Of a stretch of 64,000 bases of DNA, positions 1 to 62,854 are shown one piece after another. The stretch lies in the NCBI RefSeq assembly GCF_902459465.1, contig NC_047064.1:20336001-20400000 (forward strand). The letters run 5' to 3'. Every line of letters starts with the position of its first letter. Within the stretch, counting starts at the first letter, position 1. A program made the position numbers and the translations under genes. Under the pieces are notes generated by a model. It was not told the origin of the DNA. It did not search any database and was given only the letters and a program-made list of their open reading frames with translations. Source of the DNA: Asterias rubens (lineage: Eukaryota).

Positions 1-293
1 GTTGATAGTATAAAACATTGTGGGAAACGACTCCCTCTGAAGTAACGTACTTTTTGAGAAAGAGGTAATTTCTCACTAAAATAATAAAAGACTTCTAGCT
101 AGAAGTTTTTTATTCCTATCTGAAAGCACACAGATTCGTCCAATAAGGGTGTTTTTTCTTTCATCATTTTCTCCCAACTCTGATGACCAATTGAGCTCAC
201 ATTTTACAGGTTTGTTATTTTATACATATGTTGAGATACACCAAGTGAGAACACTGGCCTTTGACAATCACCAATAGTGTACCTTCTCTTTAA
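1..293. mobile_element. Kolobok/T2-like MITE family A, cut by the window edge
   Basis: Homologous to the complete copies listed below. The degenerate right TIR (ccaatagtgtaccttctct) is followed by TTAA at 290-293. Confidence 0.8.
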
Positions 294-294
294 G

Positions 295-2735
295 ATGGGA
301 TTCGAACCGGGGTCCACAGAGGTGAAAGGCAGGGGAATAAACCACTGAGCCAACCTAAAGGCTCCGGTCTGAGGTAGGATTCGAACCGGGGTCCACAGAG
401 GTGAAAGGCAGGGAAAGAAACCACTGAGCCAACCTGAAGGTTGCAGTCTGAGGTAGGATTCGAACCAAGGTCCGCAGGGGTGAGAGGCAGGGAAAGAAAC
501 CACCGAGCCAACCTGAGGGCTCCGGTTTGAGGTAGGATTCGAACCGGGTCCACAGAGGTGAAAGGCAAGGAAAGAAACCACTGAGCCAACCTAAAGGCTC
601 CGGTCCAGGATTCGAACCGGGTCCACAGAGGTGAAAGGCAAGGAAAGAAACCACTGAGCCAACCTAAAGGCTCCGGTCCAGGATTCGAACCGGGTCCACA
701 GAGGTGAAAGGCAGGGAAAGAAACCACTGAGCCAACCTAAAGGATCCGGTTTGAGGTAGGATTCGAACCGGGTCCACAGAGGTGAAAGGCAGGGGAAGAA
801 ACCACTGAGCCAACCTAAAGGCTCCGGTCCAGGATTCGAACCGGGTCCACAGAGGTGAAAGGCAGGGAAAGAAACCACTGAGCCAACCTAAAGGCTCCGG
901 TTTGAGGTAGGATTCGGACCGGGGTCCACAGAGGTGAAAGGCAGGGAAAGAAACCACTGAGCCAACCTAAAGGCTCCGATTTGAGGTAGGATTCGGACCG
1001 GGGTCCACAGATGTGAAAGGCAGGGAAAGAAACCACTGAGCCAACCTAAAGGCTCCGGTTTGAGGTAGGATTCGAACCGGGTCCACAGAGGTGAAAGGCA
1101 GGGAAAGAAACCACTGAGCCAACCTAAAGGCTCCGGTTTGAGGTAGGATTCGAACCGGGTCCACAGAGGTGAAAGGCAGGGAAAGAAACCACTGAGCCAA
1201 CCTAAAGGATCCGGTTTGAGGTAGGATTCGAACCGGGTCCACAGAGGTGAAAGGCAGGGAAAGAAACCACTGAGCCAACCTAAAGGATCCGGTTTGAGGT
1301 AGGATTCGAACCGGGTCCACAGAGGTGAAAGGCAGGGAAAGAAACCACTGAGCCAACCTGAATGCTCCGGTCCAGGATTCGAACCGGGTCCACAGAGGTG
1401 AAAGGCAGGGAAAGAAACCACTGAGCCAACCTAAAGGCTCCGGTCCAGGATTCGAACCGGGTCCACAGAGGTGAAAGGCAAGGAAAGAAACCACTGAGCC
1501 AACCTAAAGGCTCCGGTTTGAGGTAGGATTCGGACCAGGTCCACAGAGGTGAAAGGCAGGGAAAGAAACCACTGAGCCAACCTGAATGCTCCGGTCCAGG
1601 ATTCGAACCGGGTCCACAGAGGTGAAAGGCAGGGAAAGAAACCACTGAGCCAACCTAAAGGCTCCGGTCCAGGATTCGAACCGGGTCCACAGAGGTGAAA
1701 GGCAAGGAAAGAAACCACTGAGCCAACCTAAAGGCTCCGGTCCAGGATTCGAACCGGGTCCACAGAGGTGAAAGGCAGGGAAAGAAACCACTGAGCCAAC
1801 CTAAAGGCTCCGGTTTGAGGTAGGATTCGAACCGGGGTCCACAGAGGTGAAAGGCAGGGAAAGAAACCACTGAGCCAACCTAAAGGCTCCGGTTTGAGGT
1901 AGGATTCGAACCGGGTCCACAGAGGTGAAAGGCAGGGAAAGAAACCACTGAGCCAACCTAAAGGCTCCGGTTGCGTAGGATTCGAACCGGGTCCACAGAG
2001 GTGAAAGGCAGGGAAAGAAACCACTGAGCCAACCTAAAGGCTCCGGTTCCAGGGATTCGAACCGGGTCCACAGAGGTGAAAGGCAGGGAAAGAAACCACT
2101 GAGCCAACCTAAAGGCTCCGGTTTGAGGTAGGATTCGAACCGGGTCCACAGAGGTGAAAGGCAGGGAAAGAAACCACTGAGCCAACCTAAAGGCTCCGGT
2201 TGAGGTAGGATTCGGAACCGGGTCCACAGAGGTGAAAGGCAGGGAAAGAAACCACTGAGCCAACCTAAGGCTCCGGTCCAGGATTCGAACCGGGTCCACA
2301 GAGGTGAAAGGCAGGGAAAGAAACCACTGAGCCAACCTAAAGGCTCCGGTCCAGGATTCGAACCGGGGTCCACAGAGGTGAAAGGCAAGGAAAGAAACCA
2401 CTGAGCCAACCTAAAGGCTCCGGTTTGAGGTAGGATTCGAACCGGGTCCACAGAGGTGAAAGGCAGGGAAAGAAACCACTGAGCCAACCTAAAGGCTCCG
2501 GTTTGAGGTAGGATTCGAACCGGGGTCCACAGAGGTGAAAGGCAGGGAAAGAAACCACTGAGCCAACCTAAAGGCTCCGGTTTGAGGTAGGATTCGGACC
2601 GGGGTCCACAGAGGTGAAAGGCAGGGAAAGAAACCACTGAGCCAACCTAAAGGCTCCGGTTTGAGGTAGGATTCGAACCGGGGTCCACAGAGGTGAAAGG
2701 CAGGGGAATAAACCACTGAGCACAACCTGAATGCT
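295..2735 (-). repeat. Tandem array (32 units, 73-79 bp) of a tRNA-Glu-like SINE head with Pol III A and B boxes
   Basis: GGATTCG(A/G)ACC recurs 32 times, from 298 to 2669. The minus-strand unit reads GGT-TGGCTCAGTGG (A box)-32 nt including CTTTCAC-GGTTCGAATCC (B box). Two linker variants give about 78/79-bp and 73-bp units. Confidence 0.95.
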
Positions 2736-3539
2736 CTGTGTATGTAATACGGTCATATGAACGCTGTTACTTTTTGGGGATACAGTGTCCTTCTGAACTC
2801 TAGTATGATGTCAGTTTTAATAAGTTACAAAGTGAAGCTTCCCAAGATGTCTCATCATTTTGCCTATTTTTAGGAGCGGACAAAGAAAAAGTTGATTAAA
2901 GAGAAACTCTGAAGTCAAAGTCATGAGTCACGAGTCTTGCAAGTCTGCCGAGCCATGTCGTTTCTGACGTCTGATTTTTGTACGGAAGAGTAACATTTTG
3001 CCTTGTACACTGTTTCTAATACATGTGTATACAGGTCTTACGTACACATCCCAGGCTCAAATTTCAAGACAATCTCCTCTACTAGACTATATGTCTTGCA
3101 GCTCAGAAATCTTACCGGACAGTAAATATTTTTACAAGACCTAAATTTGTTTCGCTCTTGTGATATTTGCTGAAGGAAAAAGCTTGTAAAGCTAAAAGTA
3201 GATAATGAGTAAATCTGAGAAATGGTATTTTGAATAATAGTAGAGCGAGGGTTTGTTCCATCCGGTGATCCAAGACTATAGAGCCACAAAGGTGCAAGAT
3301 AAGTTACAGTGGCAGGAGCTCATCTCATTTGGGCGCCGTTTTAGAAAAGAAATGTTTCGTTATTCATTGATAGCAATGGTAAGATGTTCGGCACTGATCT
3401 ATTGTGGCCTCGAAAGAGTGGCTAGCCGTGCATATTTCAGTTTTTTTTCAGCCCGAGTTCCTCAGTGCGGAATAACCTTTGGTTGTGATCATAGAGTTGT
3501 CTATAAGAACTTGAGGGCGCATTGGTGATGCTTTTTGCA

Positions 3540-3725
3540 CAAACGCGACAGGACCGACGCGCGCAATTCTGTACGCACATTGAATGTGAAGTACACTTTG
3601 GAATTTGTGTTTATTGAACGCTGACGCGATGCTGTTTTGTCAACTTACAAAATGGCCACACAAACACACTGTTTTGTCAACTTAGAAAATGGCTGCCTGC
3701 GCGCATGCCGGGTCGCGTATTTATG
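3540..3725. promoter_or_regulatory. CpG-rich promoter/enhancer-like segment
   Basis: Local CpG excess. A duplicated 26-mer CTGTTTTGTCAACTTA(C/G)AAAATGGC contains the YY1-like core AAAATGGC, and there is an NRF1-like TGCGCGCATGC. Function is inferred only. Confidence 0.35.
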
Positions 3726-4204
3726 CCAGTGTGCCCTCTAGCTCTTATATATAACTAGATGGTTGTGATGTTACTATTCCAGTGCTTCTAGTCTTAATAG
3801 CTCCTTTGAAACAAAAGCAGTACCACTGCCTCGAGGCTAGTGCATTTGTACATTCTCTCTCCTCAATAAATTCTAGTCAGTTGTAAAATGAATTTTAGTC
3901 TGGTGAATATTTGTTACTTCCAAGCCCCGCGGAATTGTGGAACTTCACTTGCAGTTCAATGCCTGAATTGGATTGGTCGTATTCCAGGGGTAAAACAATA
4001 TGTCACCATCCTTTCCAATTGAAGTAAATTACATCGGATGAAAAACAAACCTACAAAACACTCGATGATACTACAATGGCCCCTTCAGCCAATGAAACCA
4101 AATCTAGGTGTACTTTGTTATTGAATCCTCCAGTACATTATTAGTAATATTCATGTCATAGTAGTGGCCCCATTACTTCTGCACAGTGAAGCTTCCCTCG
4201 TCCA

Positions 4205-4585
4205 TTAAAGGCACTGGATCCTATTGGTTATTACTCAAATTAATTGTTAGCATACCGTAACAACTTCCTTGTACCAAGCAATGGGGAGCTGTTGATAGTA
4301 TAAAACGTTGTGGGAAACGGCTCCCTCTGAAGTAACATAGTACAGTAGTTTCTCACTTGAAATATTTGAATTGAATTCGAGACCTTAGCTGAGGTCTCGA
4401 ATTCAAGCATCTGAAAGCACACGACTTTGTGTGACAAGGGTGTTTTTTCTTTTATTATTATCTCGCAACTTTGACGACCAATTGAGTTCAAATTTTCACA
4501 GGTTTGTTATTTTATGCATATGTTGAGATACACCAATTGAGAAGACTGGTCTTTGACAATTACCAAACCAGTCCAGTGCCTTTAA
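4205..4585. mobile_element. Kolobok/T2-like MITE family A
   Basis: TTAA at both ends; termini AGGCACTGGA...TCCAGTGCCT; about 375 bp. TTAA duplication with RR...YY ends is the established Kolobok signature. Confidence 0.85.
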
Positions 4586-5608
4586 ACAGGATCTAAATGT
4601 TTTGTTTTGACGGTTGGGTTAGGCATGGTTTAGCTAGGTTCTCCAGAAAGGATGTCGATCGTTAAGCTCTGTAATATAGCAGGGACCGGCTTATGATACT
4701 AAATATATAGGATATGACTGATAGTGCACCCCTACCATGCCTACAGGGTGACGGGGGTAGAGAGTGTGAAATAGGGACGGATGGGGCAAATTTAGGAATC
4801 GTCATAAACCATTGGGGTTGAAGACACTTTTTTTTGTCAGAATTTTAATAAGCTCTGTCGGAATCTTTTAATTTGGTTGGATTTTGTGGTGTTTTTGACA
4901 TAGAGTGTTTAGTGGGATTAAGGGGTAAAACTTGCTCGAAAACTTTGGCTTGCTGGTTTTTGATCTTGTAGGCTGATCTTGCAGGGAACAGGAAAGGGGT
5001 TGTTTTTGCGGGAAATTGTTAATGGTTAGTAGATATGGGGCACGATTTAGGCAGACTAAACATGACTGACTGTGGTCTGGCTGTCATGAGTTCTCAGGGA
5101 TCGACCCCAATTTGAGGAAATTATACTTCTCCCTTGAATTTTGACCTCGACCTCTATGAAGATTGAATCCTCTCATTTTACCAAGAAGGCGCCAGGCTAA
5201 TTTCCCTACAAATTGGATCAGAAAAATGGCCACCATCTATCACTCCAAGCCTCCATTGCCCTGGTCTTGGCCTTTGTGCCCCTTCAAAATTTTCCCATTG
5301 ACTTTAACAAAAGTTTTCCAATGGAAGTGCCCTTTCCAAAATGAAAATGGCCTTGCCCCAGTCAAAGATGAAATTCCAGGCCTGTCCCCTTAACTCTTGT
5401 CTAGTACCATCCTATAATAATTAAATCCTCACATTTAAGAAAGAAGGCGCCTTACTAAATTTCCCTCCTGCCTCAGTTTGGGTTAACTGATATGACTTGT
5501 AGAAAACAAAACAACTACCACCTAAGATCTCCTCAAAGCTTTTATCAGTGAATTGTACGTACACTGTATAACAATGTCTACTTTTGTTTCTCATTTCTTG
5601 CCATACAG

Positions 5609-5665
5609 GTTCTACTGACTGGTGGAGTTGGTCTGATAGCATGGAAGCAACCTTCATCGCTAGCT
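5609..5665 (+). CDS. ENTREP2: Internal coding exon of an ENTREP/FAM189-family gene (VLLTGGVGLIAWKQPSSLA)
   Basis: Polypyrimidine acceptor (tttgtttctcatttcttgccatacag) and strong donor (gct|gtaagt). The exon is 57 nt, phase 0/0. Its peptide aligns by eye with the human FAM189A1/ENTREP2 segment VLLSGLIGVVSWKRPLSLV (recalled sequence). It joins in frame to 49881-50216. The symbol is family-level: an invertebrate would likely have one ENTREP1/2/3 pro-orthologue. Confidence 0.85.
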
Positions 5666-6749
5666 GTAAGTACACCACCCTCCTTCCCTCCTCCCTCCCC
5701 TCTAATCAATATGTTTTCTAACCCCACTTGGTGAAGGAAACCAACTGCGTCCATTGCCGAGCGAGGCGTAGAGTGGAATCAGTGGCTAGTGAAACCTCTC
5801 TACTAAACGTGCGATGATAGAGGCTGATGATGATAGCGTCTCTCCCTCACGGACTGATTGGGAAAACAGACCTCAGCAAATCTGCTTCTGATCATCAAGG
5901 GTGGGATTTAATTCACATTGGTGCATGGATGGGCTTTTGATCAGCGCTGTGAGAATAGGATACAAGACTTAATGAGAACATATTGCATCTTGAGAAGCTG
6001 TCAATTTTAAAGATGCATGTTGGGAGGGCAGGTTTCTTATGAACTGTTGTGACACTTTCTAACGAAGTTATTAACCTAGAAATGAATGTGTACAACAGTA
6101 CATGAACACATGCACTTTTTGTACAACTCCGTCACTTACTTACATGTGAATGACCAGGCCATTGTTCATACAACTACAGTAACTGTCAGTTTGGTTGAAA
6201 TACGTGTACCTGTAAAAAGAGGTGTGCGATTTTCGTGAGAACTTTTGAACCTGTTAGGTTGTGATTTTGTTCTTCTCCGTACTTAAGAGTGATGTACGTG
6301 GGAACCTACACCCTTCTTGAAACCACAGCTTACGCTTGTGCTGTAGCTTGGACTCAGTCTATCTACTTAAATCCCTGTAAAGAAATTGCACGTTTTCAAC
6401 ATAACTGACAAAGCCAGAAGCCCTAGCCTAAGCGCATTAGGTTAATTAGGTAAATTAAAAGTTTCCCATGCCCCGTAGTTTTTGCTTAGAAGTAATTTGT
6501 GGTAAGCTACAGAGTTTTGTTTCAGAAGAGGAAATGTTGGATTATGCAAAGGTCATGACCTCTCTCTACCCCTTGTCTTGGTTCCCTTTAAATAGACTCA
6601 CTGATTATTCGTTTAAATTTCCCCTTTGCCAGTTTACAAATGAAAATGGCTTCGCTCAAAGACTAAGTTCTTGGTTTGTTAAAAACCACACCCTCAAGTC
6701 AACCTTGCGATGACCTAAAAAACACTGGTCGGCGACTGTCTTTTCAGGA

Positions 6750-9470: not shown

Positions 9471-9849
9471 TTAAAGGCACTGGATACCTTTGGAAATTGT
9501 CAAAGACCGGTATTCTCACTTGGTGTATTTCCAACATAATGCTTAAAATAAAATCTGTGAAAGTTTGGACTCAATTGGTCGTCGAAGTTGCAAGAGAATA
9601 ATGAAAGAAAAAGCAACCCTTGTTTCACAAATTTGAGTGTTTTCAGATAGAAATAAATAAAAAGCTTTGTGGAAATCTTTTAATATTTTAGTGAGAAATT
9701 ACCCCCTTCTCAAAAACTATGTTCCTTCAGGGGAAGCCGTTTCTCACCATGTTTTATACTATCAACAGCTCTCCATTGCTCAATACCAATAAGTTTGTAT
9801 GCTAATAACAACTATTTTGAGTAATAACCAATAGTGTCTAGTCCCTTAA
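9471..9849. mobile_element. Kolobok/T2-like MITE family A (opposite orientation to 4205)
   Basis: TTAA-AGGCACTGGATAC...TAGTGTCTAGTCCC-TTAA; the interior is homologous to the other copies. Confidence 0.8.
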
Positions 9850-12927: not shown

Positions 12928-13195
12928 TTAAAGGCAGTGGACACTATTGGTAATTGTCAAAGACTAGTCTTCACAGTTTGTGTATCTCAACATATGTATA
13001 AAATAACAAACCTGTGAAAATTTGAGCTCAATCGGTCATCGAACTTGCGAGATAATAACGAAAGAAAAAAACACCCTTGTCACACGAAGTTGTGTGCGTT
13101 TAGATGGTTGATTTTGAGACCTCAAGTTCTAAATCTGAGGTCTTGAAATCAAATTCGTGGAAAATTACTTCTTTCTCAAAAACTATGGCACTTTT
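12928..13195. mobile_element. Kolobok/T2-like MITE family A, truncated
   Basis: TTAA-AGGCAGTGGACACTATTGGTAATTGTC start. Homology stops after aaaactatggcactt and there is no right TIR. Confidence 0.8.
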
Positions 13196-21470: not shown

Positions 21471-21883
21471 TCTTGGAATGAAAACACAAAAACTTGCTTA
21501 CTCCAGTCTTATCTTTTGTCTTATGTATAGGGTCCTTTAATCTCTTCTTAACATTATTATTGTCTTTATTCTTCCTCTGAGTGAGCTTTTGTTCTACTTG
21601 TAAGCAAATTGTTTAATGTTTCGCCCTTCAATAATACATTCTTCAACAGGCAAAATACTTTCTATCCGAAAAGTCCAGCTCAACAAAAAATACTTTTGCC
21701 TGGGAAATATTGAGGTTTGAAAAAACTCAATTTTTTTTTTTTTTTTTTTACCATATTGGTAATGGTGATGGACGAAACTCAAATAATTCTTTTTTTGTCT
21801 CTGATTTTGGTGCACTCTTTCTCATGGAGTGGTGAATTACGTAGAAAACTAAAACTGCGGTGTGTGTAAATAAGAAAGATGTC

Positions 21884-22271
21884 TTAAAGGCAGTGGACAC
21901 TATTGGTAATTGTCAAAGACTAGCCTTCACAGTTGGTGTATCTCAACATAATGCCTAAAATAACAAACCTGTGAACATTTCAGCTCAATCGGTCATCGAA
22001 CTTGCGATAAAGTAATGAAAGAAAAAAACAATATTGTCACATGAAGTTGTGTGCGTTCAGATGGTTGATTTCGAGACCTCAAGTTCTAAATCTGAGGTCT
22101 CGAAATCAAATTCATGGGAAATTACTTCTTTCTCGAAAACTACGGCACTTCAGAGGGAGCCGTTTCTCACAATGTTTTATACCATCAACCTCTCCCCATT
22201 ACTCGTCACCAAGGAAGGTTTTATGCTTATGATTATTTCGAGTAATTACCAATAGTGTCCACTGCCATTAA
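21884..22271. mobile_element. Kolobok/T2-like MITE family A
   Basis: TIR AGGCAGTGGACACTATTGGTAATT / AATTACCAATAGTGTCCACTGCCA, with TTAA on both sides. Confidence 0.9.
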
Positions 22272-23909: not shown

Positions 23910-24590
23910 GGGAGGAAATTTTTGTAATCGTGTTTTGAAGACACAGTCCACAAAAGAGGGTGTGGTCCAAGTTAGGATTCAAACCGGGGCCTACAGAAGT
24001 GAAAGGCAGTAGGTAAGACACCGCTAAAATCAAGGTGTTCTGTAATTCCTGACTTGAATGCTGTAAATTATAGACCTCTTGTAGGAAATCTTTGTAACCG
24101 TGTAAGAATTGAAGACACTGTCCACACAAGAGGCTGTGGTCTGAGTTAGGATTTGAACCCTAGCCTACAGAAGTGAAAGGCAGTAGGTAAGACACCGCTA
24201 AAATCAAGGTGTTCTGTAATTCCTGACTTGAATGCTGTAAATTATAGACCTCTTGTAGGAAATCTTTGTAACCGTATAAGAACTGAAGACACTGTCTACA
24301 CAAGAGGTTGTGGTCCGTCCAGGTGAGGATTCGAACCGGGGTTTAAAGAAGTGAAACTACAGAAGGGTAAGACACCGATAAGCCAAGGTGTTCTATCATT
24401 CCTGACTTGAATGCTGTAAATTATAGATCTCTTGTAGGAAATCTTTGTAATCATGTAAGAACTGAAGACACAATGCCCACACAAGAGGGTGTGGTCTGAG
24501 GTAGGATTCGAACAGGGTCTCAAGAAATGAGAAGCAGAAGGGCAAGACACCAATAAGCCAAGGTGTTCTATAATTCCTGACTTGAATGCA
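23910..24590 (-). repeat. Tandem repeat, 174-178 bp x about 4, containing a related tRNA-like head
   Basis: B-box complements at 23975, 24149, 24327 and 24504. Shares GTCTGAGGTAGGATTCGAAC with the left-most units of the first array. Confidence 0.9.
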
Positions 24591-26340
24591 GTCTCCCCGT
24601 GGAGTTGCTGTCATACGTAAATGCCTCAGTTAGATTTGGAATTCCGTGCCAACTTCCCAGTCGTCACGTTGCTCAGTTTCCTCATTACACCAGGGGACTG
24701 TTTATTTAACCATACCGGGGACCCGGTGTAAATGTTCGTCTTATTAGACGTGTGAACAGTGACAATATCATCGCGCCGTCTCCGGGAAATTAACTGAAAA
24801 CAGTTTTCTGCGAATGTTTGAATGACACTCTGCTGTAGATTGCCTCTGCTGGGAATTCCTCTTGGATAAATAAACAAGCCAAATGTTCTTCGTTCTAATT
24901 TCCACATCTAGTGGTGAGGAAAAAATACAAATCAATTTCTTAAATATGCCGCTGGGTGCGGGGGGGGGGGGGGGGCTGACAAACAAGAAGAAATTCTTCT
25001 TTACATGTATACAATGTACATTTTATGCTCAGATCAAGCCGCATATCATGTAGCCTATGTCTCTTTCATTCTAGAAAAGCATCGGTACACACCAAGTCTT
25101 TAATTACTAGGAGATCATGGTCTCTGTTGCCCTGGTCTTGGCATTGGTGCCCCTGCAAAAGTTTCCAATAGACTGTAAGATTTTCTGATAACAAGTGTCC
25201 TCTGCAAAATGAAAAAGGGACCCTGGCATCTCAAAAATCTCAAAAAAACTCCAGGCATGACAGACACAATAGCAGTAATTTGAGTTATGTTTTTAAATGG
25301 CTTAGGGCAACTATTTTTCCATTCTTCTTAAATTTCAAAGAGTTTGTCTTTCTAAGAAAGGAACTTTTTTAAATTAATGTCTAAAAATAGGAAGCAATTC
25401 TCAACCCACACTCCTCATTTGACGATATCATTTCGATTAGTTTTCTGTCAAACTCCGAGTCGACTGTATTTCAAATGTTTGCCATCAAACACTCCTACTG
25501 TTTATCTGCAAATCAATAACCATTTCAAAACGAAATTTAATAGTGAAGTACATTCGGAGTAGACCATATACTATTACAAGTCAACCTTCCCAAAAAACAA
25601 GGTTGAATTAAATAAAGCATACAAAAAAGGAGTAGATCTTGAATCTTTAGAAATAGTGCTTCTCGTCCTTGAAGTAAAACAAGGCATTTCATTGCGGGGG
25701 GTCGTAATTTGACTGATTCCGTTGATAATTATTGATTAGGGTTGTGAATGGTACACCCTTGGTCTATCTCGTATTACTTGAACGACGACAGCTGAAAACT
25801 CTGTGCCAGTTGTCCGGCCACAATGAGACGTCCGCTACCCTGCACTTCAGATGAAACTCAAGCAAATGTTTGAGTTTGCTTTTCCAACGCTATTGACAAT
25901 ATCTACGTGTGCCGGAGTAAGTTTCTTGCTCTGCAATTTGACGTCGAAAGACGACTGTCAAATTACAGGTAGTTACTGAGCGACAGTCCTAAATGAAACT
26001 TCAAAGTATTTTACTTCACAGTTGTGACTAGTTGCATGATGGTTTTGACATAACCTATGAAAGTTAACTTGGGTTGTTCATAAAGAAACAACCTTGTTTC
26101 CTTTCAGAAGCGAGCATTTGTGGAATTGGGGCAATTTCGTATACGTGTTAGATGAATAAGCAGTTTTGAGGTTTCAAACCCCAAGGCTAGCTGTTGCTTA
26201 AATGAAATCTGATTTCAAACTTTAATTCAGGTTGAAAAATTTACTGAAATTATGTGGGGAAAAAAAGAAAGAAATATAGAAATTACAGATAACGTCCCTA
26301 TCAAAGTCGTGTGTGATAGTGGGGTGTTATGACTGATCGA

Positions 26341-41294: not shown

Positions 41295-41823
41295 TTAAAG
41301 GCACTGGACACCTTCGGTAATTACCCCCCAAAATTTTTTAGAAATGTTTTTTACTTGATACCGAGCAATGGGGAGAGGTTGATGGTATAACACATTGTGA
41401 GAAACGGCTCCCTCTGAAGTAATGTAGTTTTTGAGAAAGGGGTAATTTCTCACTCCAGTCAAATAATAAAAGACTTCAGATGAAGTATTTTATTATGTGT
41501 CTGAAAGCACACAAAGTCATGCAGCTAGGGTGTTTTTTGCCCTAATTTTTCTCTTCTAACTTCGATGACCAATTGAGCCCAAATTGTGTTTGTTGTTTAT
41601 GCATATGTTTACAAATTGGGAATACTAGTTTTGGGGAATTACCAAACGTGTCCTGGGGCGATTTTACAAAGAGTTCGGACTCAGTCCTAACTTGGGACTA
41701 GTTCTAGGGGATATAGAAAACATGTGGCTAGTCCTAAGTTGGGATGAGTAACTCGAGTAACTCGTCCTAACTCAAGATAAGTCTAGTCTTAACTTTTTGT
41801 GAAATCCACCCCAGTACCTTTAA
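41295..41823. mobile_element. Kolobok/T2-like MITE family A, interrupted in its right TIR by another MITE
   Basis: Starts TTAA-AGGCACTGGACAC. The right TIR is split as ...aattaccaaacgtgtcc [41655-41812 insert] agtacct-TTAA. Confidence 0.8.
41655..41812. mobile_element. Palindromic MITE (GGGGCGATTTTACAAAGAGTT...GTGAAATCCACCCC)
   Basis: Imperfect TIRs of about 20 bp and internal gtcctaac/gttaggac inverted motifs. A related copy lies at about 15031-15201. Confidence 0.75.
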
Positions 41824-42611: not shown

Positions 42612-43132
42612 CTGCTCCCTTTGGAGTAATTGAAATTGCATTGAGGCTGGAGTGCAAGTGGTCAATTTGACTACACAATGTCTGTACATGGGGTGTAATA
42701 CAACTAACATTATGTGATGTGAACAAGTGTAGATTTGAATACTTAGCATCAAACTAAGCTATAGTTAGTACAGTATGTAGTCTAAACTAAAGGTTTCCGC
42801 TCCCTCTTGATTAATCAAAATTGCATTGAGGCTGTCAATTTGTCAACACATTGTCTATACACGGGGTATAGTACATTTAACAGAAGATACGTTGAGATTA
42901 TGTGATCAAATGTAGATTTGAGTTTGCATAAAACCAAGCTGTAGTACAGTATGTAGTCCAAACTAAAGGTTCATGCGCCCTCTTGATTAACCAAAATTGC
43001 ATTGAGGCTGCAGTGGTCAATTTGTCCACATAATTATTGTCTGTACATGGCATACATGGGGGTACTAATAGAACATACGTTGAATTTATGTGAACAAATG
43101 TAGATTTGAATACTTAGCATAAAACCAAGCTG
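42612..43132. repeat. Degenerate tandem repeat, about 176-185 bp x about 2.9
   Basis: AAATTGCATTGAGGCTG recurs at about 42633, 42818 and 42994, with collinear downstream homology. Confidence 0.85.
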
Positions 43133-43543
43133 TCTTTAAGGGATGATATTACGTCGTCTCTCCACCTTATGGACAAGAGTCTCGCTCCGGCACTTGTGAC
43201 CAAAAAGCCCCTGCCGCCTAGAGATAAGACAGATGACATGGAATGCTAAATGGATTATTTCCATTTCAAATGGCAAAAACATGAATTTGTTTAAAGAGTC
43301 TACGGAGCGAGATGAGACTGTTGTGGATGCAGGCTTTAGGACGGAGTTGAGAGAGGGGAAGGAGGGTGGTATCTCCAGGGGGGTAACCGCTAACCGAAGA
43401 TGGTCTCAGATTACATCACTTGAATGGTTTGGTTAATTGGTGGGGTGGGGTCATCACAGCAATTATTACTGTCCTCGTATATCATGTGGAGGGTAAACTG
43501 CCTCGTCGTACAAGATGGTCTGCAACTAATAAGGAGCACTGTT

Positions 43544-43943
43544 TTAAAAACACTGGATATTAATTGGTAATTACTCAAAATAATTGTTAGCATAAAAAAT
43601 TACTTGGTATTGAGCAATGGAGAGCTGTCAACAGTGTAGTAGAGTTACCAGTGTGAGAAACCGCTCCATCTTAAGTAATGTTAGTTTTTGAGAAAGAAAT
43701 AATTTCTCACGAAAATATTTGAATTGATTTCGAGACCTCAGCTGAGGTCTCGAATTAGAGCAGCTGAAAGAAAAAAACTTGTGCGACGAAGGTTTTTTTT
43801 TTTCCATTTTTGTTCTCTCGCAACTTTGATGACCAATTGAGTTCAAATTTTCACAGGTTTGTTATTTTTATGCTTATGTTGAGATACACCAAGTGAGAAG
43901 ACTGGTCTTTGACAATTACCATCAGTGTGTCCAGTGTCTTTAA
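43544..43943. mobile_element. Kolobok/T2-like MITE family A
   Basis: TTAA flanks and degenerate TIRs. Perfect 26-bp central palindrome TTCGAGACCTCAGCTGAGGTCTCGAA at 43729-43754. Confidence 0.85.
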
Positions 43944-44160: not shown

Positions 44161-44885
44161 TTGGTTCTTGGCCGAGCGGTTAAGAGCACCGAATTCAAAC
44201 TCTGGTGTTTCTGATCAGCAGAGTGTGGGTTCGAATCCCCAGCCGTGACACTTGTGTCCTTAAGCAAGACACTTAACCATTGCTTCGTCCTTCGGATGGG
44301 ACATTAAGCCGTTGGTCCCATGTGTTATGTAACGCATGTAAAAGAACCCAGTGCACTTTATCAAAAAGAGAAGGGTTTCCCCCCGGTGTTCCTGGTCCGA
44401 TCGACAGCAAATGCCCCTTATTTTTGACCGCGCGGGGGCGCTATAAATAGTATTTTGATCACTTCCAGGGGTACACGCGATTCGCCCTGCACAAATTAAT
44501 AGGCGTTCTGTCACTTTTGTTGCGCCGTAGTTTCAATTTGCTTTAGAGGTGGATTATAACGGCTCCTTTTAAAGTCTTATTGTCTGTGATGGATTAGATG
44601 TCTGTGGTTATAATGTGTTCCAATCTTTAAAAACTGTTTTGCGTATGAATGAATATACCCCCGGAAGTGATTGAGAGCGCCCTCACGCGGTCAAAAATAT
44701 GGCCCATTGCACCACAGCATCTTGTAAAGCATTACATGGTGCTATCAGAATTAGGTCTCATAATTCAAACGTAGTCCCACAATCTGGCAGGAAATACTGT
44801 ATGTTACAGTGCCAGGAGCGTCACTGAGTGAAGGACATGTGCGCTTTATAAGAAGCCACAATTATTATTATTTATTATTGTTGAT
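44161..44885 (+). mobile_element. tRNA-headed SINE with Deu-domain-like core and (TAT)n tail, split by a MITE
   Basis: A box TGGCCGAGCGG and B box GGTTCGAATCC. The core tcggatgggacattaagccg..ggtcc...gtaaaagaacccagtgcact...cccggtgttcctgg resembles the recalled AmnSINE1/DeuSINE domain. The 3' end reads gcgctttataagaagccacaattattattat. Confidence 0.7.
44405..44712. mobile_element. MITE-like inverted-repeat element inserted in a SINE
   Basis: Arms TATTTTTGACCGCG..GGGCGCT..CACTTCC.GGGGTA are inverted at about 44420-44475 and 44656-44700. No TSD could be resolved. Confidence 0.65.
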
Positions 44886-46350: not shown

Positions 46351-48513
46351 ACAAAGCAAGTCTTTTATCTTCTGAAACTAGAGCGCTAAATTATTGAAAT
46401 CCAATTCAGAAACTTAAAAAACCAGACGTATAAATCATATAAAACCTACCCCCACTGGTGGATAGGGTTGCTTGGGGCATACGTGTCTCTTGGATGAGGT
46501 CTTGGGGTGGAGTAAGCCTGTCTACCTACTGTTTATATTATCATTTTTTTTTTATGTGTAAAAACAGTAGGGGGTGGATGGGACCCATACTTGAAGGGTC
46601 TCGCTTGGTTCCAAGTCATCAATCGTGGCTTTTTAGTCGTCGGGATAGCCGCTGCAAACAGCGCCCTCTTGCGATCTTTCTTGGTCATTTATATTGCGAG
46701 TTAGGGCGCGTGATAGCTAATAATGTGGGGGCGTTTTCGTGGCTGAGATGCAGAAGAATAACCCCGATCTAAGACTTGAATCAAGTCTAGTAATTACTCT
46801 GAAAATTAATGGCAGTAAAAACTTGTGGTAAGAAGTACATCAGCTTTGGAGATAGCAAAATGCATTTTGAGAAACATTTTTAAAGGTTTTGGCAGGAAAG
46901 GCCTGGTTTCAGCATGGTTGGATTGGAGCATCGCTATGTTCAATTTGCTCTAGAATTGCAAGGGTCGTGGGTTCGAATCCCACCCGAGTAACATGCCTGT
47001 GATATTTGTTTTCACAGGACTAGTGAAAGTACTGAGTATACAGTGCTAACACACATCGGTGTATGGGTAAAAACCAAAATTCATTTTCTTTATCCCCGAT
47101 GCAAATTTAACATCTCTGTTATGTTCAATTCTGATCACCCAACACCAATTAGAATATAACAAGAACATTTTTTTGTCTGCAATTCTTCTATTTAAAAAAA
47201 AAAAAAAAAAATGGCCAGACGTTTTGACTCTAGCAGAGGCTCTATTTTGTACTTTTTTTCCCCCATACACATAATGCTGTGAATACTAAAAAGTCACTTG
47301 GCCAATTTCCTATTCACATTTCTCCAACATTTTTCACACCCTACATACTAAGACTTGTGTTAATTACTTCCTTTTTGATTGAACTATGTGTTACAAAAAT
47401 ATGGCGTGTTGCGAACGTGACAGAGAGCTTAAAAGGGGGAGGAGAACTAATAAAGCGTGGAGCCCGTTTAATTGTCGCCACTTACCTGTTAATTGAAAGC
47501 AACCACTGGCACCACTGGAGGATTTCTCTGTGTGGATATTACAATCTTGTGATGAATTAAAGAGGAGACTTTATTAAGGATTTTATGTAGTACCCAAGGT
47601 GGTAGTTTCTGAAATAACTAATAAAATTGTTACTGTCCCTGACAACTTTAGATTAACTGATCAAAGGCATTAAAGGGGTTTTATGCTTTTGGTTACGTGT
47701 AATTGGTAGAGTTTAAAACGAGAATTTATACAAGAAATGTTAAACATTTTTGTTTAACAATTTGTAATAAAAAATGTACTGTAGTGTTTGAGAAACGAGT
47801 AAAACAATTTCATGCAAATCATTTTTGTATCAGTGAGACAAAAAGTATTTTAAAGTATTTTAACATGTACAGGGGATTTATGCGACTCTCCTGAAATCAT
47901 TGTTTGTGATTTTCACTTTTTTTTCTAAAAAAATTTATATCTAATGAGGCTGAAATGTTTACAGGTAATCTATATTATTTCTATCTTCATTCATCGTAAG
48001 TAGGGATTAATGTCACGGCCAATAACTTGATCTACAAAAGGTATCAAAATCCTTTAAGAAATATACACGTATTGGTTTGCTTTTCTTATAATAACTATAA
48101 AGAAACTGTTTGTCTGGTGTTAACTGGAGTTCTGGTTGATAGAGGTTGCTCCTGTCTCCACGTAAAGTGCATTATCCACATCCACAAATTAGGCCTATTA
48201 ATTGCGTGCTGGTTAATTTAAAAGGGAACCCAGACACCATTTTTTATAACCAACCTATACACTGCCAATGATCAGCGGGACCATGTAATTGCAAAAAAAT
48301 CAAATTGCTCTCGGGGGCTTCATTTGAGAGAGGCGCCCCTTGATGATTTATAGCGAAGAGGGAAGACTTGGTAGACCGAGACGGACAGGGTGGTTGTAAT
48401 GAATCCTTCGTGGGTATCGCCTTCGCATCAAATCATCCCGGCAAAATGAAAATCTCAGAGATGTCTAAATGTTATGTAGGCATCAATGCAATGCTAATGT
48501 GGATGACGTGTTA

Positions 48514-48691: not shown

Positions 48692-49880
48692 TAACAACTG
48701 GTGCTCAGAAAGTCCAAATGATAGCGACCTGTTTTTAGATAAAAAAAAAAACATATTTGAAAGCTATAGGTAAATGACTCTTTTTTCACACAGAATGATC
48801 ACTTGATGAAGATAATAATTTATTTCCAGTGTTCGTGGCTGAAGGGGTACATTTTTAATTAAGTGCAATTTCCGTCTTGATCCTTCAGGGAATTCCAGAA
48901 AAGTGCTGAAGCCACGGTTGATCAGTGTCAACATGTTCGTTGCATAATAAATATAATAGTGTAGTTACTAGTTTTTATATAGGGCTTAAATCAACCGGTG
49001 TCTCAAAGCACTTATGATCATTTGTTTCCAGACAGGTTATTGAAGTTTTTTGAATTATGAGACCCATTTATGTAACACCTTGTAGAGGTTTACAAAGTGC
49101 TACAGCACAGTCAGCAGCTACTGCCAGAAATAATTAAGTAAATGTGACACTGCAGAGGGATCCCTACTAAAGCTTTAAGGCAATGGTCTTTTCTTTTCCT
49201 GGTCAGGAAGTCATAATTGCTTCTCTCCACCCAGGAGTACCATTGGGTACCGGCCGCCGGGGTGTGACCTGTGACAGACTAGCATCCTTTCTAGGGGATT
49301 TCAAAACATTCTGTCGTTTAATGCTAAGCTAACCTGATATCAACACCGGCCTGATGAGCTATATTGGTTTGGGACAGACTTTTCTATTTGTGTTTAATGT
49401 CTTGTTAGGGTACACAGAAGTATAGCTTAGGTCTTTACTCCTTCAGGCCCGGAGTTTCATCATTGAGAGGGCAAGGCCATTTTCATTTTGTAAAGGGCAC
49501 TTCCATTTGAAGGGACACCAAGGTCAAGACCAGGGCCCAATTTCATAGAGCTGCTAAGCACAAACATTTGCTTAGCATGAAATTTCTTCCTTGATAAAAA
49601 CAGGGTAACCAACCAAATTTCCATGTGATTTTCAGGATAAGCAAACTACACCTGAATACCAGGAACATGCAATATGCAACTAATGGAGATATAGTTGGTA
49701 ATAGTGAGGAAATTTCTACTGGAGCATTTCAAGGGCACCAAGGCAATGACCAGGGGGCATGGAGGCAATCGCCTTTGTTGCCTCCACGGAGTATCAGGTC
49801 TGTAAAGTATTTGTTTTTTATTCTCTTATATAAATGAAAGTGTGGCTTATTTTCTCGTTATTCTGTTTTGTTTCCTTCAG

Positions 49881-50216
49881 TTGAGTTTCTTCACTTTCCT
49901 ATCGGCCGTCTGCGTGGTCCTCCACCTGGTAGCTACGGCGCTCTCCGGCCTCAGTGGTGCCGACTTCCAGACCCTGGTCAACTGCAAGGAGAGTAGCCGC
50001 CCAAGGTCGTGCCTTTGCTGCGAGTCTCATTCCGGGTGTATGAGATGGGAGGACATGATATCTTTCGAGGGTGTGGATGACTGCTCCATGATCACTACCA
50101 CCTTGAAGGAACTCATGTACTCAGTATGCGTAACTAATATAGTTGCATGTGTAATCTGCATAGCGTCAACCATTATTGGCTGCGCATACATCGTCAAGAG
50201 GCATACAACGAGACGG
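49881..50216 (+). CDS. ENTREP2: Internal coding exon of an ENTREP/FAM189-family gene (CD20-like TM3, Cys loop, TM4)
   Basis: Acceptor ttctgttttgtttccttcag and donor cgg|gtaagc; 336 nt, 112 codons. The peptide LSFFTFLSAVCVVLHL...CLCCE...TLKELMYSVCVTNIVACVIC matches recalled FAM189A1 motifs LSAVCV, CVCCE and TLKDLLFSVCALNV. Confidence 0.9.
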
Positions 50217-50375
50217 GTAAGCTTGAATCTATCATTTTTGATAATATTAGATGTTAAATTAGCATTGGGACAAAGAGTATTCATTTGGGTTTTACCCGTA
50301 TACACCGATGTGTGTTAGCACTGTATATTCCTCACTTACAAAACACAGGACTTGAACTGCCTCTAGCCATCAGGC

Positions 50376-50548
50376 ACTCTCGGTGGTCTAGTTGGTAAGA
50401 CACTGCTCAAGAGTGGCAAGGGTCATGGGTTTGATTCCCACCCGAGTAACATGCCTGTGATTTTGTTCACAGGACTCGGGTAAGCACTGAGTATACAGTG
50501 CTAACACGCATCGGTGTATGGGTAAAAAACCCAAATTAATAATGTTCT
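50376..50548 (+). mobile_element. tRNA-derived SINE; other copies at about 46930-47110 (+) and a fragment at 50280-50335 (-)
   Basis: A box TGGTCTAGTTGG, B-like GGTTTGATTCC, and a shared body cccacccgagtaacatgcctgtga...cagtgctaacac.catcggtgtatgggtaaaaa. Confidence 0.8.
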
Positions 50549-51441: not shown

Positions 51442-51821
51442 TTAAAGGCAGTGGACACTGTTGGTAATTGTCAAAGACTAGCCTTCACAGTTGGTGTATC
51501 TCAACATATGCATAGAATAACTAACCTGTGAAAATTTGAGCTCAATCGGTCATCAAAGTTGCGAGATAATTATGAAAGAAGAAAACACCCTTGTCACACA
51601 AAGTTGGTTGATTTCGAGACCTCAAGTTCTAAATCGTGAGGTCTTGAAATCAAATTCTTGGAAAATTACTTCTTCCTCGAAAACTATGGCACTTCAGAGG
51701 GAGCCGTTTTTCACAATGTTTTATACTATCATTATCAACCTCTACCCATTACTCGTCACCAAGTAAGGTTTTAAGCTAATCATTATTTTGAGTAATTACC
51801 AATAGTGTCCACTGCCTTTAA
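51442..51821. mobile_element. Kolobok/T2-like MITE family A
   Basis: Near-perfect TIRs of about 24 bp; TTAA at both ends. Confidence 0.9.
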
Positions 51822-52307: not shown

Positions 52308-52689
52308 TTAAAGGCAGTGGACACTATTGGTAATTACTCGAAATATTAATTAGCATAAAACCTTACTTGGTAACGAGTTATGGGGAGAGGTTGATTGTAC
52401 AAAACATTGTGAGAAACGGCTCCCTCTGAAGTGAAATAGTTTTCGAGAAAGAAGTAATTTTTAACGAATTTGATTTTGAGACCTCAAATTCTAAATTTGA
52501 GGTCTTGAAATCATGCATATGAAAGCACGCAACTTTGTGTGACAAGGGTGTTTTTCTTTCATTGTTATCTCGCAACTTCGACGACCAATTGAGCTCAAAT
52601 TTTCACAGGTTTGTTGATTTTTGCATAATGTTGAGATACACAGAGAAGACTGGTCTTTGACAATTACCAATAGTGTCCACTGTCTTTAA
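52308..52689. mobile_element. Kolobok/T2-like MITE family A (inverted relative to 51442)
   Basis: TIRs and TTAA at both ends. Confidence 0.9.
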
Positions 52690-56745: not shown

Positions 56746-57100
56746 TTAAGGCACTGGACACTATTGGTAATTGTCAAAGACCAGTCTTCTCACTTGCTGT
56801 ATCTCAACGTGCATAAAATAAAAAAACCTGTGTATTTTTAGCTCAATTGGTCGTAGGAGTTGCAAGATAATATTGAAAAAAAAAAAAAAAAAAACACCTT
56901 GTCACCTCAAATTCTAAATCTGAGGTCTGAAAATCAAATTCGTGGAAAATAACCTCTTTCTCGAAAACTATGTCAATTTCAGAGGGAGCCGTTTCTCAAA
57001 ATGTTTTATACTATCAATAGCTTCCCATTACTCGTTACCAAGTAAGGTTTTATGGTAATAATTGTTTTGAGTAATTACCAATAGTGTCCGCTGCCTTTAA
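56746..57100. mobile_element. Kolobok/T2-like MITE family A
   Basis: TIRs and TTAA at both ends, with a small internal deletion. Confidence 0.9.
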
Positions 57101-60319: not shown

Positions 60320-60706
60320 TTAAAGGCAGTGGACACTATTGGTAATTACTCAAAATAATTATCACCATAAAACCTCACTTGGTAACGAGTAATAGGGAGA
60401 GGTTGATAGTATAAAACATTGTGAGAAACGGCTCCCTCTGAAGTGACATAGTTTTCGAGAAAGAAGTAATTTATCACGAATTTGATTTCGAGACCTGAAG
60501 TTTAGAATTTGAGGTCTCGAAATCAAGCATCTGAAAGCACACAACTTCATATGACAAGGTTGTATTTTCTTTCATAGTTATTTCGCAACTCCGACGACCA
60601 ATTGAGCCCAAATTTTCACAAGGTTGTTATTTTATGCATATGTTGAGATACACTCAGTGAGAAGACTGGTCTTTGACAATTTACCAATAGTGTCCATTGT
60701 CTGTAA
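60320..60706. mobile_element. Kolobok/T2-like MITE family A
   Basis: Left TTAA-AGGCAGTGGACACTATTGG. The right TIR is slightly degenerate (gtccattgtct-gtaa). Confidence 0.85.
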
Positions 60707-62467: not shown

Positions 62468-62854
62468 TTAAAGAAGATGGACACTATTGGTAATTACTCA
62501 AAATAATTATTAGCATAAAACTTTACTTGGTGACGAATATGGGGAGAGGTTGATGGTATAAAATATTGTCAGAAAGGGCTCCCTCTGAAGTGACAAAGTT
62601 TTCGAGAAAGAAGTATTTTTCCACGAATTTGATTTTGAGACCTCAGATTAAAAATTTGAGGTCTCAAAATCAACCATCTAAAAGCACACAACGTCGTTTG
62701 ACAAGGGTTTTTTTTTTCTTTCATTATTATCTCGCAACTTTGACGATCAATTAAGCTAATTTTTTCACAGGTTGGTTGTTTAATGTATATGTAGAGATAC
62801 AGCAAGTGAGAAGACTGGTCTTTGACAATTACCAATAGTGTCCAGTGTCTTTAA
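62468..62854. mobile_element. Kolobok/T2-like MITE family A
   Basis: TTAA flanks; interior homologous to the other copies. Confidence 0.85.

Follow-up and report, generated by a model that had tools for sequence, protein, structure and literature searches.

According to our analysis, the tandem array at the beginning of the studied stretch of Asterias rubens DNA (64,000 nucleotides, hereafter the window) is probably a SINE-derived minisatellite, most likely a neutral and young repeat. Judging by alignment to dispersed relatives, the array unit is the head of a SINE-like element. The array was delimited as follows:

294..2738, minus strand: tandem array of SINE-like heads, 32 head-to-tail units (TRF, A-box split, motif counts and alignment to the consensus of dispersed copies).

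TRF reported a single array (298-2736, period 78, 31.8 copies, 93% matches), and splitting at the A boxes gave 32 units of 72-80 nt on the minus strand, most of them 73 nt (S units) or 78-79 nt (L units) long. These two analyses bear out the preliminary description, which had proposed a minus-strand, head-to-tail array of 32 units. The A box, TGGCTCAGTGG, is exact in 30 of the 32 units. The B box reads GGTTCGAATCC in 27 units, GGTCCGAATCC in four and GGTTCCGAATCC, with an inserted C, in one, so that 5/32 B boxes are altered; our recount gave the same numbers as the earlier one. The gap between the two boxes is 32-33 nt, in agreement with the approximately 32 nt given previously, and 19-24 nt separate the end of a B box from the A box of the next unit. 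When a strict cassette (TGGCNNAGTGG, 28-40 nt, GGTTCGANTCC) was searched for in the whole window, 25 matches were obtained and all of them (25/25) lay in the array, compared with an expectation of 0.00 from 100 shuffles of the window. A type-2 Pol III promoter is defined by an A box of the form TRGCNNAGTGG and a B box of the form GGTTCGANNCC at a distance of 30-60 nt; by this measure, each unit is a consensus type-2 Pol III promoter head. The minus strand of the array contains no TTTT over 2.4 kb, and the nearest downstream T4 runs on this strand (86-89 and 78-81) are both within a MITE, as had been stated for the first of them and was confirmed by a T-run search. The G+C content of the array is 55%, versus 39% for the window, and the window contains no N.

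The S and L units follow each other in irregular blocks (LLLLSSLLSLLLSSSLSSLLLLLLSLSSLLLL), and lag analysis revealed local block duplications of 2-3 units. A fixed higher-order repeat was considered, since TRF also gives a 224-nt period, and was rejected because the lag analysis showed no clear periodicity. A coding repeat was rejected as well: the minus strand of the array has open reading frames of up to 278 aa, which arise because the unit lacks a stop codon in some frames, and the sole Pfam match (16.7 bits) is below the cut-off. In addition, every unit junction (for example, 2639-2656, minus strand) has a 5-6-bp inverted repeat (GGAGCC, 8 nt, GGCTC) that takes in the start of the A box and is picked up 26 times by a scan for bacterial-type terminators. 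To our knowledge, such a repeat has no meaning for Pol III; it may favor slippage.

The units had been described as tRNA-Glu-like, with CTTTCAC at the site of the anticodon loop. This motif occurs 31 times on the minus strand of the array, and its raw position, 32-38 from the A box, is as claimed, but it is accompanied by neither an anticodon stem nor a cloverleaf: on direct reading, the five-base arms beside it form two pairs only, one of which is a G-U wobble. ARAGORN with default settings and Rfam at the gathering threshold found no tRNA in the array and one in the window, at 50377. The Rfam tRNA model gave no match in the array when run on 1-3000 at E<=10, and none in 20 dispersed copies of the parent element (see below). 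Relaxed ARAGORN searches (thresholds of 80-90%) called a few "tRNA-Lys(ctt)" of 87-88 nt across the borders between units and, at -ps80, one "Val(cac)" in the array; since these calls differ, the anticodon reading depends on the register. The fold z-scores of single units and a dimer relative to dinucleotide shuffles (-0.6, +0.6, -1.6, and -0.3) were no better than those of shuffled sequences. Together, these results argue against both a tRNA gene and a tRNA-Glu pseudogene and leave the earlier label unsupported. The array units are tRNA-like in nothing beyond the two boxes, and, as they have no tRNA structure, "type-2 Pol III promoter head" should replace "tRNA-Glu-like."

The only "tRNA" called in the window (50377-50450, plus strand, Ser-AGA) scored 30.3 bits in Rfam at a cut-off of 29. 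It lies about 60 nt past the end of the reading frame with the CD20-like exon described below, and its locus is 88% identical over 140 nt to 46946-47084 (plus strand). The match extends past the tRNA part, and this locus is therefore the head of another SINE family and not a plain tRNA gene.

The parent of the array was recovered from metagenome contigs scanned with a 23-nt core pattern. The scan yielded 31 contigs from JACSEG01* and JACSEF01*, two neighboring GenBank WGS sets, each with a single copy of the element between unrelated flanks. Two soil-metagenome matches to the core pattern (L018 and L032) were attributed to chance and left out, and a stricter pattern (core, B box and L-type tail) had no matches in the metagenomes. 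The 31 contigs have other interspersed repeats in common with the window, at 70-88% identity, which indicates that their host is a relative of the organism from which the window comes; the parent consensus was thus built from the contigs of a related host, not from Asterias rubens copies. As a side result, the public "metagenome" assembly (JACSEG01*/JACSEF01*) proved to be rich in the host DNA of an echinoderm-like animal.

Alignment of the 31 dispersed copies gave an element consensus of approximately 235-250 nt. It begins with GGGG(C)AT(T)CAGGTTGG, continues with the A and B boxes and a well-conserved body of approximately 150 nt, and ends near GGATGTG without an obvious A-tail. The body of the consensus has three T4 runs, the first of them about 10 nt past the amplified part. 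A clean target-site duplication was seen in one dispersed copy only (L010, 9 nt); retroposition of the parent element is likely. The array units align to nt 7/9-87 of the 31-copy consensus with 0-4 differences (95-97% identity). The earlier view that only the head and not the SINE body was amplified therefore holds, because the units correspond to nt ~7-87 of the full-length element. An nhmmer search with the SINE profile found no match to the parent body in the 64-kb window except in a second array (array 2, described below), and the window outside the two arrays was free of dispersed parent copies. Another tRNA-type SINE, which has an exact B box and a body containing CTTAAGCAAGACACTTAACC, is located at ~44165-44420 (plus strand) and is common to the metagenome contigs L001 and L011 (71-74% identity).

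The two ends of the array differ in nature, and the features bordering it are as follows:

2739..3300, no strand: DNA bordering the array at its 5' end, with no second copy in the window (a blastn search with 2736-3300 matched only itself).
1..293, minus strand: MITE that lacks approximately 100 bases because it is cut by the window start, with the terminal inverted repeat GGCAGTGGACACTATTGGTAATT, inserted at TTAA 290-293 in the last array unit.

In minus-strand sense, the 5' end of the first unit (~2736-2738) carries GAGCATTCAGG, which matches the element at its 5' terminus. At the opposite end, the last unit reads ...GGTTCGAATCCCATC, followed by TTAA (290-293) and then the MITE, and it matches the parent element up to the TTAA. 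The boundary previously set at 295 is thus the insertion site of the MITE and not a natural end. It follows that the array may continue beyond the window.

The MITE family is about 385 bp long and has a 23-nt terminal inverted repeat, TTAA target sites and a variable internal palindrome. Its 12 copies in the 64-kb window are 72-80% identical, and all of them end at TTAA:

1-289, MITE copy
4291-4566, MITE copy
9490-9766, MITE copy
12928-13193, MITE copy
21883-22189, MITE copy
41378-41651, MITE copy
43649-43928, MITE copy
51442-51731, MITE copy
52390-52689, MITE copy
56758-57017, MITE copy
60402-60706, MITE copy
62549-62854, MITE copy

In its TTAA targets, this 12-copy family appears piggyBac-like. 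A satellite carried by the MITE or by a Helitron was rejected: the array lies outside the inverted repeat and the TTAA of the MITE, and the 11 other copies are flanked by unrelated DNA.

The array lies very probably in an intron of a CD20-like gene, two exons of which were located in the window:

5609..5668, plus strand: small internal coding exon of the CD20-like (ENTREP/FAM189-type) gene, AG/GT-flanked, encoding VLLTGGVGLIAWKQPSSLA (tblastn with P0006, P0007, and P0009).
49875..50219, plus strand: next coding exon of the CD20-like gene (Pfam PF04103, E 8.5e-07, profile positions 61-156; phmmer, tblastn).

The exon at 49875-50219 matches residues ~66-217 of 34 library proteins (phmmer, P0001-P0034), and the exon at 5609-5668 encodes the conserved stretch just before that one. 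Positions 1-5600 gave no match to an earlier conserved motif, ACPYWAGF in the relatives, so that the upstream exon most likely lies outside the window and the array within an intron. Since PF04103 and tblastn place the exons on the plus strand, the array is antisense to an ENTREP-type gene, as the preliminary description had proposed.

The anatomy of the locus suggests the following course of events. One copy of the SINE-like element would have been inserted antisense into an intron of the CD20-like (ENTREP-type) gene, and its first ~80 nt would then have been duplicated in tandem. Unequal crossing-over would have enlarged the array to at least 32 units and homogenized it, and a TTAA-specific MITE would have landed later in the last unit. 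A single founder insertion of this kind would predict ACCGGAGCC and then the SINE body beyond the MITE. The sequence GGRGCMTT occurs twice in the element, at nt 1-8 and nt ~80-87, as an imperfect direct repeat of 8 nt, and the duplication junction is located within this repeat. The unit junction reads ...ACC GGAGCCTT TAGGTTGG..., where GGAGCCTT corresponds to element nt ~80-87; the element itself starts, at its 5' end, with the similar GGGGCATT, and the first unit and two inner units read G(G/A)GCATTCAGG. With a breakpoint in an imperfect direct repeat, the process is more likely to have begun with slipped or unequal pairing. The units at the edges of the array differ from the array consensus in 14, 10, 5, and 4 columns, compared with 0-2 for the inner units, and the CCCC state of the parent consensus is kept mainly near the edges. 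Unequal exchange is expected to leave such a pattern of diverged edges, nearly identical inner units and S/L blocks without regular order.

Two details do not fit the single-founder model, as far as the comparison of units and dispersed copies can be read. Both outermost units have TTTATTCCCC, whereas all 30 inner units have TTTCTTTCCC, which is the state of the parent consensus. Furthermore, the difference between S and L units (CCYGGACYGG versus CCYACCTCARACYGG) is a complex indel that also divides the dispersed copies into two subfamilies, with L004, L019, and L029 in the S subfamily. Both details would be explained by ectopic gene conversion with dispersed copies as donors, or by a founder that comprised several insertions.

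The same details could be read as signs of retrotransposition, by which the array would have been made or spread either as multimeric cDNA of a circular or read-through RNA (in the manner of retrozymes or Penelope) or by several SINE insertions in one spot. In favor of this scenario, the S and L unit classes mirror the two subfamilies of the dispersed element, and the inner units are closer to the family consensus than the edge units at two sites. However, the units lack the body and the 3' end required for priming by reverse transcriptase, the S and L units are homogenized with each other apart from the indel, and the edge-to-centre gradient fits exchange in place. A search for hammerhead and other self-cleaving ribozyme motifs, as expected of retrozymes, gave no family match in 1-3000 of the window at E<=10. 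We therefore regard retrotransposition as improbable. That the length of the array is an artefact of assembly, with repeats over- or under-collapsed, appears more improbable still. Near-identical units of 73/78 nt, with interior units differing at 0-2 positions, are hard to assemble, but the order of S and L units is irregular, individual units (u2275, u2119, u2044, u1592, and u1056) have variants of their own, and the junctions to unique DNA and to the MITE are clean. The preferred reading remains that of a minisatellite that grew in place from a SINE head.

A second array is present in the window, on the same strand as the main array and inside the 44-kb intron:

23913-24592, minus strand: array 2, ~3.9 units of 174-180 nt, 83-89% alike (TRF, blastn, nhmmer).

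Its unit consists of a related head, approximately 35 nt of SINE body and other sequence, and the units match nt 13-121 of the parent consensus (the head and the start of the body) at approximately 73%. An exact B box remains in 1/4 units, the A box has degenerated, and T4 runs occur. Array 2 looks like an older, decaying case of the same process of head-array formation. A low-identity tandem repeat was also reported by TRF at 42717-43133 (period 176, 2.3 copies, 78% matches).

The question of whether the main array is active has to be considered separately from its origin. From the boxes, TFIIIC binding and some minus-strand Pol III initiation are biochemically plausible. We nevertheless consider it unlikely that the locus is an active Pol III/TFIIIC platform, with TFIIIC on many units, some minus-strand initiation and an array kept for its effect, which is predicted to be either a multimeric RNA from read-through transcription, antisense to the host pre-mRNA, or an intronic barrier or roadblock to Pol II. 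This possibility derives its appeal from the 25 units with exact A and B cassettes at tRNA-like spacing, from the absence of a minus-strand T4 within 2.4 kb and from the Pol III transcription of tRNA-related tandem families of amphibians, as cited in PMC10702118. The second of these points, on which the preliminary description had placed weight, loses its force when the parent is considered. The array is free of T4 by construction, because the unit was cut from inside a Pol III-transcribed element, and the missing terminator was inherited rather than designed. Three T4 runs are present in the parent consensus itself, so that in this lineage T4 may stop Pol III incompletely; the T4 run at 86-89 may thus not be the true end of any transcript.

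The spacing of the units also argues against a dense active platform. TFIIIB occupies approximately 10-45 nt upstream of the Pol III start site. With 19-24 nt between a B box and the next A box, the TFIIIB site overlaps the B box of the neighbor, and full complexes on adjacent units would clash. TFIIIB-TFIIIC complexes could hardly form on neighboring units together; TFIIIC alone could bind. Neither is variation depleted in the boxes, where 6/22 columns are variable versus 22/48 elsewhere (Fisher p = 0.19, with little power in a young homogenized array), and 5/32 B boxes are altered. We see no sign of selection on the boxes and infer neutrality from this absence of a signal. In the sister array at 23.9 kb, the boxes have decayed, which likewise speaks against upkeep for an effect. 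Little credence can be given to a broader version of the idea, according to which starfish genomes would repeatedly turn SINE heads into competent intronic Pol III/TFIIIC arrays, the present one being TFIIIC-bound, or transcribed into read-through multimeric RNA in antisense, and thereby forming a chromatin boundary or slowing Pol II elongation. ETC sites and the tDNA and B2-SINE insulators are cases of B-box DNA that recruits TFIIIC without productive transcription. They consist of single or few sites with demonstrated occupancy and function, whereas the starfish array comprises 27 exact B boxes in 2.4 kb, for which TFIIIC binding is plausible.

As a probably neutral repeat, the locus fits the kind of SINE-derived satellites (sSat) known from squamates, judging by the structure of its units. 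In squamates, the units of such satellites are part of a tRNA-type SINE, and the array ends in a unit that continues as far as the end of the SINE (Vassetzky et al., 2023; PMC10702118). Short units occur (67 nt in snakes), as does di- or trimeric alternation, and longer arrays are more homogeneous; their birth has been proposed to proceed by duplication and then unequal recombination (PMC10702118). The starfish unit is homologous to a defined portion of a SINE (nt 7/9-87, on a consensus from a related host), its 32 units exceed the minimum of four head-to-tail, and its first unit carries a match to the element's 5' end and adjoins unique DNA, the 3' side being hidden by the MITE and the window edge. 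The main snake unit, in contrast, consists of box B and body only, whereas the starfish unit is the head alone with both boxes; squamate arrays prefer subtelomeric regions, and the starfish array is intronic and has an echinoderm host.

The amphibian Pol III tandem families are similar in being head-to-tail repeats with a tRNA-related Pol III promoter in each unit. As cited in PMC10702118, they include the newt PolIII/TAN, which is derived from tRNA-Glu and was transcribed in vitro (Nagahashi et al., 1991), as well as Xenopus OAX/satellite 1, Rana/polIII and Hy/polIII. According to the same account, their units are longer (~200-360 nt or more) and include non-tRNA sequence, and no parent SINE is given as known for them. 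The starfish unit, in contrast, has 73-78 nt and an identified interspersed parent, and its transcription is putative. Another invertebrate satellite with a monomer from a segment of a tRNA-type SINE (Nin-SINE) is PcH-sat of the limpet Patella caerulea (PMC11121367). Its 179-bp monomer, however, derives from the 3' portion of the SINE and lacks both boxes, and the satellite is pericentromeric and accounts for approximately 10% of the genome. In the light of these comparisons, the particular features of the starfish array are, on present alignments, its very short unit, which amounts to a whole promoter head, its occurrence in an echinoderm and its probable position in an intron.

Functional interest aside, the single locus is otherwise an ordinary repeat. 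SINE-derived satellites have been documented systematically only in squamates, and the authors left their existence elsewhere open (PMC10702118); with the starfish array, an echinoderm joins the list. How a mobile element gives birth to a tandem repeat can be followed at this locus, where the parent, the microhomology at the junction, the gradient of homogenization and the later MITE can be read side by side, and the nearby array 2 shows the likely later fate of such arrays. Because the part that was amplified is, by chance, an entire Pol III promoter, the array would lend itself as a naturally occurring test of TFIIIC recruitment in vivo by a dense series of A and B boxes.
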